Shown here: positions 8,947 through 47,354 of the stretch, piece by piece
Layout: each line of letters opens with the position of its first letter
Position numbering within the stretch: the first letter of the stretch is position 1
Origin: Rebecca billardiae RCC1528
Lineage: Eukaryota > Protista > Haptophyta
Assembly (NCBI GenBank): GCA_965240325.2
Contig: OZ251225.1
Coordinates: forward strand, 3,658,001-3,722,000
Length of the DNA: 64,000 bases
Reading direction: 5' to 3'
Translations under genes and position numbers: made by a program
The notes under the pieces: model-generated
The model's database searches: none
What the model was told of the DNA's origin: nothing
The model's input: only the letters and a program-made list of their open reading frames with translations

Positions 8947-8972
8947 TCTCTCTCTCTCTCTCACTCTCTCAC

Positions 8973-9030
<58 letters not shown>
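8947..9030. repeat. (CT)n microsatellite
   Basis: Directly visible. Confidence 0.98.
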
Positions 9031-9033
<3 letters not shown>

Positions 9034-9043
9034 GTCTACGACT

Positions 9044-9898
9044 GACCCGTTGCAAGCGTGAGCGCCGAAAAAACGACACTTCTGCGGCCTAGAGTGATGA
9101 CGATAGTCTTGCCGGCGGCGGCGGCGGCGGCGGGAGCGTGACAGTGCGTCTACCATCACCTTCCGTTTAGCGCGCTACGCCGCGCGTGCCGGGTAGTGCC
9201 CCCGGCCCGCCGCAGCAGCAGTCGACAAGTAGTGAAGAGACGATGACCGCGGACGCAGTGCCGCAGTACAGCCTGCATCCACTTGCAGCGCGGCGCGCAC
9301 TGTAGTTGCACTTGCAGCGCTCGCGCTCAGCGAGCATGGGCGTGCGCTCAGGCGTGTCAAGTGCTGTCTCGTCGGCGCGCTTTCGCCTGCCACCTCGCGC
9401 ACCCGTGCACGCAGCTTCATCGTCTTCATGAGGACTGCTGTGCTGCTGTCGCCATCACCCGAGTCCGCGGTCGCGCGGCGCGCGCGGTGGCAGCTGTGCA
9501 CCGCAGAGTGTCACCGCTGCTGCTTCGCAGCAGTCGTCAGCAGTTGCGTCGTCATCCTCCTCGTCGTCGGCTTCCACTGCCGCAAGAGGGAACGCTGCCA
9601 AAGCTGCAGTTGGGAGGCAAGCCCTTCGCTCTTCCCACCGCGGCGCGCGCGTTGTGACAGCCCTCCCCGTTTGGCTTCTCTTGACCACCTGCTGAGGGTT
9701 TTGCAGCTCGATCTCGGCAACGGCACCACCTGGCGACGAACGGATTGGATTGGTGCACGGGGAATTGGATTCCCCGCGCACCAATCCGCTCGGTTCGTCG
9801 CGCCCGGCCGCCATCGCCCAGCGCTAGTTGCAAAACCGTATTTTCACCGGTACGTCGCATTTTCACCGCCCTACGGTCACTCACCCGTGCAACGGGTC
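9044..9898. mobile_element. Non-autonomous TIR DNA transposon, copy 1 (855 bp, 4-bp TSD GACT)
   Basis: TIRs GACCCGTTGCAAGCGTGAG ... CTCACCCGTGCAACGGGTC. GACT is duplicated at 9040-9043 and 9899-9902. A homologous copy lies at 46099-46956. Confidence 0.85.
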
Positions 9899-10132
9899 GA
9901 CTGCTGATTAGTGCCGATATTATTCCGGCGGAAATAACTCGCGCGTGCTACACTACTTTTATATATAATCGCCACCACGACTGATCGGGGCCGGGGGCCG
10001 GCGGGCAACTAGATAGACTGTCCGGAGCCGGAGCCCGTCGTGTGCAATACTCTTACGTATTCTGATACGCGACTGCAATCTGCATCACCAGCCTCAGCCT
10101 GACACTGCCGTCTTGATCAGCCGCCACGCTCA

Positions 10133-11431
10133 TCACATCTCCTCGCGCAGCACGCACCCCGTGGTGACGACGAGTCCCAGCTCACGCGCGCGCGCTAGCA
10201 CGCGTTCGGAGTCGGCTCCCGGCTGCACGAAGAGGTAGCGGATGCCCAGCGCCCACATCTCCTCCACCACGCGCAGCCCGAGGCGGGGTGAGATCACCAG
10301 GTCGACTGCAGAGATCCGCTCCGATCCGCCTGCCTCGGTCAGCGAGCGGAACAGCTCGGCAGGGCCATCGTCGGCGCATCGAGGGTCGACTTGGACCACC
10401 GCACGCCCCGCGGCGCGCAGCCGAGCCACGATGGCGTGCGCGGGCTTGGCCGGGTTGCCCACGTCGCCCACAACCGCCCACTCGCGTTGCGCGAGCACCA
10501 GCTCGTGCATGGTCGGCCCTGCCGCGACCGACGGCAGGCCGGGGGGCGCGGCGGTGAGCCCGCCTGTCGCTTCCGCCGCCGTTCCGACCGGGTGTCGCAG
10601 CTCCCGCAGCAGCGAGCGCAGCAGCCGCGTGCTCAGTCCCATCACCGAGTCGACGCCGCCCACGATGGCGCGCAGGTGCGGCGCGACAGCAGGATGCTCC
10701 ACCATCAGCCCGCCCGCGCAGTGCAGCACCGCCTCGTCGGCGAGCAGCGTGCGCACCACGCCCTCGGGGATCTGCCCGAACTCGATGCTCGCCACGTCCA
10801 CACCGACCGCCCGCCGGCCGGTCCGGAGGTCATGCAGACAGATCGCTTGCACCGTGCCGCACGGCGCGCGCGAGTAGGACTCGATGAACTCGCGCGCCTG
10901 CGAGATCGAGGAGGGCTTCTCGCGGATGTGCCCCTCGTACGTCACCACCTGGTCGCCGGTGAGCAGCACGCGCATCTCGGCGCATGGCTTGCCCTCCGCC
11001 TCCTCCGTGCCGGTGGCGGCAGCGGCATCGGTGGAGTCGGCGGCGAGTCGGCTCAGCAATGCATCCGCCTTTGCCTCCGCAATCTGCCGGACGAGCACAT
11101 GCGGGGGGTCGACGGAGCGGTCACCGATAGCCTTCTCGTCGATGTCCGGCACAATCACGTCGAACGTCGCGCCCGTCGCCGCGAGGATCGCGCGGCGCGT
11201 CGCCGACTTTGAGCCGAGCACGAAGCGCGGCGCCGACGGCTCCAGCCGCACGGCCGAAGCGCGAGCCGCGTCCACCGTTGCGAGGGCGGGCTGCTGACCC
11301 GCGCCGCCAGCGGGCGAGGGAGCACTCAGCGCGCGCGCACGCAGCGCAGGGAGCGCGAGCACGACGATCGCATGCCGAGCGCCGAGGTACATCAGTCCGC
11401 CGCCGAGAAGGCACGAGAGCGCAGTCAGCAT
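10133..11431 (-). CDS. Maf/YhdE-like nucleotide pyrophosphatase fused to a C-terminal YccU-type CoA-binding domain
   Basis: Maf motifs FVLGSKSATRRAIL, PDIDEKAIG, LLTGDQVV and IREKP. C-terminal WAVVG..NPAKPAH, VDLVISP, LFVQPGA and GCVL are typical of CoA_binding_2. The start is taken at MLTALSC. Confidence 0.85.
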   Translation of the reverse strand: MLTALSCLLGGGLMYLGARHAIVVLALPALRARALSAPSPAGGAGQQPALATVDAARASAVRLEPSAPRFVLGSKSATRRAILAATGATFDVIVPDIDEKAIGDRSVDPPHVLVRQIAEAKADALLSRLAADSTDAAAATGTEEAEGKPCAEMRVLLTGDQVVTYEGHIREKPSSISQAREFIESYSRAPCGTVQAICLHDLRTGRRAVGVDVASIEFGQIPEGVVRTLLADEAVLHCAGGLMVEHPAVAPHLRAIVGGVDSVMGLSTRLLRSLLRELRHPVGTAAEATGGLTAAPPGLPSVAAGPTMHELVLAQREWAVVGDVGNPAKPAHAIVARLRAAGRAVVQVDPRCADDGPAELFRSLTEAGGSERISAVDLVISPRLGLRVVEEMWALGIRYLFVQPGADSERVLARARELGLVVTTGCVLREEM

Positions 11432-11980
11432 CGGCGGCGCGCCTGGCGCGACGGCATCGCTTTGCCCGAGGAAAAACCCGGCGGACAAAATAAACGAATT
11501 CTACGCGACATTCTACAAGGTTTCCACGCGGTAGATACTGTCGATTCGGCCTCGGTGGACGCCGATGAAATCGCCGAATAAAGAGTTGATTGCTCGTTTG
11601 ATGGTACGATAGCAATCAGTCCAGGGACTCCAGGGAGATTAACGCGCACACCCGGCCATATCTATTCGGCTTAGGCAGCAGTACGACCTTAAATGAGGGG
11701 AGTATTCCACAATACTTGTAATCTGCTCACCCCAGCACTGTGTTCACTATTACTGCGTTGAATGGGTCGGGGTACGAGGGTACCGACTACCCATGCCATG
11801 TTTACTGCTAACCAATAGTAGTACCCAATCTGACCCCAATGGACGTACTCGTGTACTAGATAATTAGCTGGCGCAATCTGCCAATCTCCACCGACGAGGA
11901 TTCACCCCGCGAGTCGGCGAGTGTCCAAATCGTCACCTCGTCCCTCCGATCCCCTTGGCGACGCGGAACGCGCGGCGAGC

Positions 11981-45250: not shown

Positions 45251-46098
45251 GCAGAAGCCTGCGAGTGCGGCGCCGCACCGACGGCACTGCGTCTGCCAGC
45301 TGGGACCTCAGCGGTCACGGACACGGTGCTCGGACGCGCACCGCCACCGGGTCCAAGCTGAGCAGTGCCAGGACCAAGGACCATGGATGGGCGTTGCATC
45401 TGGTAAACACTCTTACACACACAGCACACACACACACACAGTACCGCGTGATATATCAGATATATATATATATATGTGTGTGTGTGTATGTGCTGTAGTT
45501 ATTAGTTAGTATACATTAATAACGACTGATGCTGATGATTTATTACACTATTTCGGACGAGTAATTTGAGCCGCCCTGATACGCAGTCGTCCGAGGCGGC
45601 TGCCAGGGCGCCGCCACTCGACGAGTGCCAACTCGACGTCCGAACGAACGGCGCGCGGACGCCGGCACCGGTACGTACGGCTAGTAACGTCGGCTACCAC
45701 CGGTCCGTACCGGACACGGTCGGATACTAGCATCAGTCCGCGGGACACTCAATAACTCATCCTGGAATAACCGTGAATAAGTCGATCAACCAGAGTACAG
45801 TAGCAGTACCAGTAGTTCTGTTCAATTCAGAATCGACTCAGACTAGCTTACTGTCTACTGTCTACTCGGGAGTCGGGGGCCGCATCATCCTGGCCGATCG
45901 CCGTCGGGCTGTTCCATATCTCAGCCTAGTTACGGAGTCACTGAGCTACAGTAAGCTACGGAGAGTACGCTGTACGGACAGACTCCTCGGCCACCTCGGG
46001 CTCACGGTCTGCAGTCAGCCACGGTGAGCCACTCTGACTGAGTCTCGTCAATCGTCATCGGAGTGCCACGTCCGACAGACCAACCAGCAACAGCCAGC

Positions 46099-46956
46099 GA
46101 CCCGTTGCACGCGTGAGCGCCGAAAAAACGACACTTTGGCAGTGATAGTCATCAGCACCGTCGCCGCATCGTGGGCATGCCGCTGCCGCCGCCGGCGGCG
46201 GCAGCGGGAGCGTGGCAGCAGATCTACCACCTTCCGCGTTACGCGCTGCGTCGTGCGCGCCAGGTGGCAGGTTTCCCAGGTCCGCCGCGCGGAAGGCAGC
46301 GTGAGCGGTCGGCGAGCGCACGGAGATGAGAAGTAAGCGCGCATCGTGAGAGCTTCAGCAGCTTGCCCACGCGCTTCACGAAGGCGGTGTGGTTGCGTGC
46401 GCACGCCTTCTGTACCCGTACCCGCGATCAAAGCGTGAGCCACTCCCTAGGTCTTGCCTGCGCATCGCGGGCCGCGCCTCGTCTCCTGAATCCTCGTTCA
46501 CGAGGACAGCACGTGTATCCGTGTACGCGCTCGCGGCCGATGGCGGCTCCCCGCGTCGAGAGCCGTTTGGCTGGAGCCGCATCCAAGGGCATGTATCCTC
46601 ACGGCCCCACCCGATGCTGACGCTGAGGTGGCGTGCTTGCCGAAGGTAGCCGCATTGGCTGATCTCTCTGCCTTTGGGCAACCCTTTGCAACCGCGCCGG
46701 CTCACGCTGCCAGCGCGCGCGCGGCGTGGCTTCGTGGTGGACACCTGCCCTGGGTTTTGTCGTTCGTTCTCAGCGACGGTTGGGTCGATTGACATGCGGA
46801 TTGGATTGGTGCATTGCGAATCGGCTTCGCAATGCACCATTGCGCTCGGATCGGCGCGGACGTCAGCCATGCGGCAGCGCGAGCGACAAAACCGCGAGAT
46901 TTCATACGCTTGTCGTTTTTTCATACGCTCACGGTTACTCACCCGTGCAACGGGTC
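46099..46956. mobile_element. Non-autonomous TIR DNA transposon, copy 2 (858 bp, 4-bp TSD CAGC)
   Basis: TIRs GACCCGTTGCACGCGTGAG ... CTCACCCGTGCAACGGGTC. CAGC is duplicated at 46095-46098 and 46957-46960. Confidence 0.88.
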
Positions 46957-47354
46957 CAGCACAGACGATCTCAGCCAAAGGACCATCGTCAAATCTCAGC
47001 CGTCCGTCTGCACTCGTGCACCAGTACTGTGCTGTGCCTGCGCCGGTCTGTTTTGTGGCGGCCGGTGTCTTTATTGTGCAGTGTTGGATGGCGTCAATCA
47101 CGCCCGGCTTAACCAAGTGACAATAAGTGTGCACGTTATAAAAACATTAACATAGTAAACTGTACCGACTGTCCGACTCGGTACGTCGGGCGTCAATCTC
47201 GCCTTCCTGAGGTGTCGTGTGCGTCTCTTTTTCTTATTAGTAAACTGTATGGGGGTACTATTTTGTAAATACCCCCATACTTGTATTCAGTGACTTGTAT
47301 TGTACAGTTTACAAGCTAGCTATACAGTTTACTAAGAATAAGAGACGCACACAG

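Follow-up and report, generated by a model that had tools for sequence, protein, structure and literature searches.

Both repeats described in the window, which is the whole 64,000-nucleotide stretch of Rebecca billardiae DNA analysed here (G000:C7:3658001-3722000, 66% G+C), are non-autonomous, protein-less DNA transposons of the cut-and-paste type, with terminal inverted repeats (TIRs), and they belong to one family. Towards their right end they carry a palindrome able to form a hairpin, and comparison of the subfamilies indicates that its complementarity, and not its sequence, has been kept. With about an even chance of this being correct, the palindrome is read here as a cis-acting DNA signal of the right end, directed to the transposase, and not as a guide RNA.

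The assembly that contains the window is GC-rich and comprises 72 Mb in 41 contigs. The genome-wide TIR search suggested in the preliminary description, run with a 31-nt pattern for the left end and a 28-nt pattern for the right end, returned 96 left ends (none with the reversed control) and 87 exact right ends; the reversed control patterns for both ends together gave 0-1 matches genome-wide, and the size of the family is about 95 copies. As for the insertion sites, a perfect 4-bp target site duplication (TSD) flanks 45 of the 46 complete copies inspected at the fetched loci, with 42 different tetramers, in agreement with the earlier claim of a TIR family having a 4-bp TSD of no fixed sequence. 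The target has a weak two-fold symmetric preference, with G at position -2 beyond the TSD in 23 of 45 cases and C at +2 in 26 of 45; a symmetric target preference is typical of a dimeric DDE enzyme. The flanks of the insertion sites have 56% G+C, compared with 66% in the window. A Pfam scan of the open reading frames in A and B elements (both window copies) found no domain, and no pair of ends in direct orientation at retroelement spacing occurs among the 96 left ends. The TSDs, the TIR counts, the lack of a coding domain and the absence of direct end pairs therefore identify the repeats as non-autonomous cut-and-paste transposons, whose anatomy indicates transposition by a DDE enzyme supplied in trans, with staggered cuts 4 bp apart.

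Regarding the TIR taken by itself, its 19-mer has 392 matches in the genome; a larger family was considered as their cause and rejected, because about 174 of them lie inside an unrelated 1.3-kb family, named S and described below. Elsewhere, the exact 19-mer has 108 single matches in metagenome contigs and one in viral contigs; none of these extends past the seed, so that all are attributed to chance and were rejected as relatives.

Table 1. Location and properties of the two window copies, the subfamilies and the long copies of the family. Positions are those of the window, unless a locus or contig is named.
Feature	Position	Strand	Properties
Copy 1, subfamily A non-autonomous element	9044..9898	+	855 bp; 97.9% to the consensus of 22 A copies
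Copy 1, TSD GACT	left 9040..9043, right 9899-9902		Sequence at both flanks
Copy 1, left 19-bp TIR	9044..9062	+	Holds a small ACCCG/CGCGT near-palindrome
Copy 1, right 19-bp TIR	9880..9898	-	Holds a perfect ACCCG-loop-CGGGT mini-palindrome
Copy 1, right subterminal hairpin/palindrome	9751..9783		14-bp stem, 5-nt loop, one private T>C mismatch
Copy 1, A-specific extended imperfect palindrome	9697..9837		69-nt arms, 74% complementary; DNA fold z = -6.95
Copy 1, two direct subterminal repeats ATTTTCACCG	9840-9849, 9859-9868	+	Putative transposase-binding repeats
Copy 2, subfamily B non-autonomous element	46099..46956	+	858 bp; identical to the B consensus
Copy 2, TSD CAGC	left 46095..46098, right 46957-46960		Sequence at both flanks
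Copy 2, left 19-bp TIR	46099..46117	+	
Copy 2, right 19-bp TIR	46938..46956	-	
Copy 2, left subterminal palindrome of B	46180..46207		Perfect 28-bp (GCC)n/(GGC)n palindrome
Copy 2, right subterminal hairpin/palindrome	46807..46839		Perfect 14-bp stem, 5-nt loop
Copy 2, two direct subterminal repeats TTTCATACGC	46900-46909, 46919-46928	+	
Subfamily A	window copy 1		About 27 left ends; mostly 94.6-98.0% to own consensus; consensus 850 bp; older
Subfamily B	window copy 2		About 41 left ends; 16 of 30 fetched copies equal to the consensus; 858 bp
Subfamily D	not in window; one copy at L017:2693-3538		About 26 left ends; 846 bp
Best autonomous candidate	G000:C10:1550966-1555002		4,037 bp; paired ends
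Long B-like copy	G000:C13:1925361-1929254		3,894 bp; B positions 1-811, about 3 kb, last 47 bp of B
Long B-like copy	G000:C13:1279137-1282059		2,923 bp; same break point as G000:C13:1925361-1929254

For the two copies in the window (Table 1), the limits given in the preliminary description, 9044-9898 and 46099-46956, are exact, and the TSDs assigned to them, GACT and CAGC, are each present on both flanks. The termini that the copies were said to share do form an inverted repeat, but the 11 bp then attributed to it are too short: the TIR measures 19 bp, with 17-18 of 19 positions matching in both window copies, and an inverted GAAAAAACGAC-type motif comes next. The right end also has two direct repeats of 10 bp after this motif, and the tips of the element have the form GA-CCC...GGG-TC. 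At least 25 relatives of copy 1 are nearly full-length, with 92-98% identity. The extension of its stem to 9733-9801, noticed earlier, is real and reaches 9697-9837, but it is specific to subfamily A; in every A copy, element positions 654-794 match themselves on the opposite strand. The perfect left palindrome of B is weaker in D, and A has a plain (GGC)n run in its place; the palindrome of the left end is therefore probably not an essential part of the element.

In the surroundings of copy 1, a long (CT)n microsatellite with CTCA interruptions (window 8950-9030) lies 13 bp to the left of the left TSD, and an intron-less open reading frame of 451 amino acids (window 10133-11488, minus strand), presumably a host gene, lies 235 bp from the right end.

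Three subfamilies, A, B and D, were distinguished. At least 40 copies of B are 97-100% identical; B copies are mostly identical to one another, and the subfamily is therefore very recent. At least 22 copies of D are 98-100% alike and 88-89% identical to B; the left end of D is GACCAGTTGCA, and B and D are collinear over their whole length. The TIR family is recently active, and is currently or very recently mobile. As for A and B, homology extends over about 190 bp on the left (z = 10.9 against dinucleotide shuffles) and about 255 bp on the right (z = 17.5, same control), and it is undetectable by the same shuffles in the 410-bp middles (z = -0.2 and 1.9); the earlier remark that the middles are dissimilar and the lengths nearly equal (850 vs 858 bp) is thus confirmed. 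The similar lengths fit descent from an ancestor of about 850 bp, the middle of which diverged by substitutions and small indels; selection for transposition would have preserved the ends during the drift of the middle, and a constraint on length would be unnecessary.

Some copies are involved in nested insertions. One A copy (L022) is inserted into another repeat and is flanked by its own 4-bp TSD; two others, at L017:248-2315 (G000:C7:3933508-3935575) and L027:217-2137 (G000:C32:939035-940955), are themselves split by a nested insertion of about 1.1-1.2 kb. The D copy listed in Table 1 lies 378 bp from the interrupted A copy in L017, which suggests a local insertion cluster.

Family S, mentioned above, is a non-coding repeat of 1.3 kb (L061:490-1786, G000:C1:3654418-3655714) with at least 40 copies at 97-99% identity; other loci are L040:195-1485 and L022:1071-3205, and the TIR-like 28-mer inside the repeat has roughly 174 matches in the genome. 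It has a 7-bp hairpin with a TTC loop at the 5' tip, a GC hairpin near the 3' end and insertion sites flanked by A/T; because of these hairpin-forming ends and insertion sites, the family looks Helitron2-like. Family S carries a captured fragment of an A-like element, inverted and internally deleted, which includes the right TIR. A longer variant (L030:1276-2682, G000:C3:3417786-3419192), of a type with at least seven copies, retains the part from A position 200 to 790 (80% identity) and with it the hairpin; in this captured copy the apex of the hairpin is decayed, with one mismatch and one G-T pair. Within the fragment captured by S, the A-like element's own transposition is irrelevant and the hairpin is not needed.

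Candidates for an autonomous partner are three long copies (Table 1), found by matching up left ends, hairpins and right ends by position, and known from their coordinates alone; each of them could be either an autonomous relative or, instead, a copy that has received a nested insertion. In the best candidate, on C10, the left end is of A type with one change, the stem is of B type with a variant loop, and the right 150 bp are canonical. Both long copies on C13 break at B position 807-811 or thereabouts, between the two TTTCATACGC repeats, and this shared break point suggests either one mobilised composite or a nested insertion with site specificity. Inside the three long copies there is no match to the models for piggyBac, MULE, rve or TnpB.

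Regarding the superfamily, 4-bp TSDs are known for piggyBac and Kolobok (both at TTAA), Ginger1/2 (with TG...CA-type ends and an rve integrase), Sola and some Academ elements (PMC10045372, PMC3627910), and the present family is possibly most compatible with a Sola2-like assignment. The Sola2 families DFa and PPa of dictyostelids begin with GA, end with TC, and have 4-bp TSDs and TIRs of 12-21 bp (PMC3627910, supplement 11). The earlier suggestion of a Sola-like element is possible and gains a little from the 4-bp TSD, the short TIRs and the outermost GA...TC, which agree with Sola2 (PMC3627910); the terminal agreement falls short of the 11 aligned bases of the Repbase rule. In addition, the TSDs of dictyostelid Sola2 are AT-rich (AWWT), whereas the Rebecca billardiae family accepts any tetramer, and the terminal sequences are otherwise unrelated, the agreement being confined to the outermost GA...TC. 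To our knowledge, no subterminal hairpin has been described for Sola. It should be noted that Pfam has no model for Sola, Academ or Kolobok (PMC5751038).

The other systems considered share single traits with the family. In piggyBac, the target is TTAA and the CC...GG tips are directly next to the TSD (PMC10045372). Like piggyBac and piggyBat, which have asymmetric subterminal palindromes at up to about 120 bp from the tip, the element has a 4-bp TSD and CCC/GGG next to its tips; unlike piggyBac, it has GA/TC between these and the TSD, and its target is not TTAA, a tetramer found as TSD in none of the 45 copies with a duplication. The piggyBac model PF13843 matches three open reading frames (C37, C1 and C19), none of them near any left or right end or in the long copies, and piggyBac is contradicted by the TSDs, the tip sequence and the absence of such a frame near the ends. 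Ginger1 and Ginger2 are contradicted by the GA...TC termini, which are not TG...CA, and by the lack of rve in the long copies (rve model PF00665: 27 matches with all 32 candidates scored, none in the three long copies). MULE/MuDR elements usually have TSDs of 8-10 bp; this group is contradicted by the 4-bp TSD and by the absence of a MULE domain in the long copies (PF10551: five matches genome-wide, none in the three long copies). Within the latter group, Muta1 carries at its end a short palindrome for which symmetry is important, and the TIR described here also holds a 5-bp/5-bp mini-palindrome; unlike the present family, Muta1 has TSDs of 8-9 bp and its palindrome is at the very tip, as opposed to 117-150 bp inside. 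The 3' hairpin of Helitrons and the IS200/IS605 elements resemble the family in having structure-defined, sequence-variable hairpins near one end, which act in cis as single-stranded DNA signals, but they use HUH enzymes and are without TIRs or fixed TSDs, whereas the family has a TIR and a 4-bp TSD.

As for the palindrome of the right end, it is 33 nt long (14-bp stem, 5-nt loop), is found in all three subfamilies at 117-150 bp from the right tip, and is present at one end of the element only; the hairpins reported earlier at 9751-9783 and 46807-46839 are thus borne out. The consensus left arm is TGGTGCACGGGGAA in A, TGGTGCATTGCGAA in B and TGGGGCATTGCGAA in D, and in each subfamily the right arm is perfectly complementary to it. 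The stems of A and B differ by three compensatory pairs, as had been claimed, and D adds a fourth, T-A to G-C. In an alignment of five sequences, in which the covariation comes from three independent lineages (A, B and D), 97% of the cells pair and 4 of the 14 pairs are changed on both sides; when the same alignment is slid by 1-3 columns, at most 51% are paired. By direct counting, the chance that the six differences between A and B fall in three complementary pairs is about 4e-5, and that of the two differences between B and D forming one complementary pair is about 0.01. All pairs of the consensus stems are Watson-Crick, and no consensus has a G-U pair in the 14-bp core. The hairpin lies within the best-conserved block of the right end, and A and B agree in all 18 nt that precede its variable apex. 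The stems of B and D are extended with different partners, not homologous to the extension of A; because the outer helices are not homologous between A and B/D, only the 14-bp core is taken as conserved. For this core, the alignment indicates that complementarity and not sequence is kept across the subfamilies, in line with the view of the preliminary description.

Within subfamily A, 20 of the 22 copies examined have a perfect stem; single substitutions are found in copy 1 and in one other copy, and one further copy has a 12-nt deletion. The mismatch of copy 1 (A-C/G-U), formerly interpreted as a G-U pair on the minus strand, is a private T>C change of that copy. Singleton substitutions, which postdate insertion, number 2 in the hairpins of the 22 A copies, with 1.5 expected; since they are as frequent as elsewhere, inserted copies are not under host constraint. 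Variants shared by lineages within A affect 0 of the 33 hairpin columns, compared with a background of 3.6%, a difference that is not significant (P = 0.29). A test by cells had given P = 8e-5 for constraint within A and was rejected as pseudo-replicated; the column test not being significant, the evidence for constraint comes from the comparison between subfamilies.

According to the anatomy of the elements, a DDE-type transposase supplied in trans recognises the 19-bp GACCCGTTGCA... inverted ends together with about 200 bp of subterminal sequence, excises the element, and reinserts it with staggered cuts 4 bp apart, which leaves the 4-bp TSD. The 33-nt palindrome may be bound by a dimer of the DNA-binding domain of the transposase or, alternatively, be recognised after its extrusion as a hairpin or cruciform; in either case it would mark the right end and help to assemble the transposition complex, and lineages with a change in one arm would have survived only with the matching change in the other.

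The features that count for a DNA signal are the occurrence of the hairpin in all three amplified subfamilies, its position in the conserved right-end block and at one end only, the four compensated pairs out of 14, the Watson-Crick consensus and the decayed apex of the captured L030 copy. There are precedents in known transposons. In Muta1, second-site mutations that make the terminal palindrome whole again bring back the binding of the transposase to duplex DNA (PMC5499845). The transposase dimer of piggyBac and piggyBat contacts subterminal palindromes through two C-terminal domains; these palindromes are placed asymmetrically, in piggyBat at one end only and up to 107-120 bp from the tip (PMC11707139). 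On the other side, a perfect palindrome of 14+14 bp is longer and more exact than most palindromes bound by proteins, and a perfect stem with compensated apical pairs fits true base pairing, in single-stranded DNA or RNA, at least as well; the covariation has only three independent lineages behind it, and the three changes between A and B could stem from a single templated event; and the plus strand is somewhat the better RNA folder in B and D, where the outer helices contain 3-4 G-U pairs, a bias that is a weak hint of strand asymmetry.

It is possible, though rather unlikely, that the family represents a cut-and-paste lineage undescribed or barely described so far, Sola-like or new, whose transposase needs a true hairpin or cruciform at about 120-150 bp inside one end. 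Structure-specific recognition of ends is known to us from HUH/single-strand transposons and not from TIR/TSD elements; if this possibility were true, end recognition in a TIR/TSD transposon would be specific for structure and not for sequence.

Covariation in a DNA palindrome is expected also at the site of a protein dimer or from template switching in a quasi-palindrome, so that covariation alone cannot separate RNA from DNA. Two further readings of the hairpin are both on the unlikely side. The palindrome could be a functionless by-product of mutation, in which template switching or repair of an extruded hairpin copies changes from one arm to the other; this is rather unlikely, and it agrees with the purely Watson-Crick pairs, with stems whose lengthening follows a different register in each of A, B and D, as is the way of self-perfecting palindromes, with the perfect 28-bp palindrome at the left end of B, absent from A, and with the decay of the hairpin at the neutral rate after insertion (2 singletons vs 1.5 expected). 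Against it, no block of the right end is more conserved than the one with the hairpin, whose flanks are identical in subfamilies with middles that have diverged beyond recognition, and its distance from the end is unchanged in all amplified subfamilies. An action as RNA is improbable as well: the hairpin would belong to the UTR or 3' end of the transposase transcript of an autonomous element, or to a small-RNA precursor, and in the transcript it would serve stability, processing or translation control, the short elements having merely inherited it. Compensatory changes between conserved flanks are classically taken as the mark of RNA structure, and both the folds, more stable than those of shuffled sequences (z = -8.1 to -10.7 for A, -2.2 to -4.3 for B and D), and the better folding of the B and D plus strand, with its G-U pairs in the outer helices, speak in the same sense. 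However, stable RNA or DNA folds carry little weight, because any palindrome guarantees such stability; the step from covariation to a functional RNA made in the preliminary description is not supported, as the stems are purely Watson-Crick, with no G-U pair in the 14-bp core of any consensus, and no Rfam family comes near its threshold, the generic miRNA-precursor models reaching 28-39 bits vs gathering values of 100-140. Moreover, the outer helices of A and B are at non-homologous positions, a Dicer substrate would normally have a stem longer than 14 bp, and what is selected in non-autonomous copies is transposition and not expression.

The proposal, raised earlier, that the right end encodes an omegaRNA scaffold for a Fanzor/TnpB nuclease is very improbable and close to refuted. 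Its geometry is compatible, the structured region lying no more than 150 bp from the right end, and Fanzor1 genes are carried by Sola2 elements, which make 4-bp TSDs (PMC3627910); but the PF07282 zinc-ribbon model has no match at E ≤ 1 in the whole genome, while 9 of 14 control genomes respond to it, the elements have TIRs and TSDs and no open reading frame adjoining the hairpin, and there is no Rfam match. With no TnpB/Fanzor match and no Rfam or coding-domain match, the guide-RNA idea is therefore unsupported. Finally, a 4-bp TSD and a length of about 850 bp would suit solo LTRs, but that the repeats are solo LTRs or another element without TIRs has next to no probability: the ends are GA...TC and not TG...CA, the 19-bp ends are inverted, none of the 96 left ends has a partner in direct orientation at retroelement spacing, and an integrase domain is absent near the long copies.

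In conclusion, the family is new, and the kind of element is already known. It is a clean case of a DNA transposon family, active now or until very recently, in an algal-type genome that has been little studied; its insertion signature, a 4-bp TSD without fixed sequence combined with GA...TC ends, is uncommon. Should the hairpin be only a self-perfecting palindrome, this would be an ordinary new MITE-like family; if it is required for mobility, the four compensated pairs would make the family a natural test case for a eukaryotic DDE enzyme that reads the shape or symmetry of DNA. In addition, the near-identical copies of subfamily B point to a live transposase, which may become a genetic tool for such algae.
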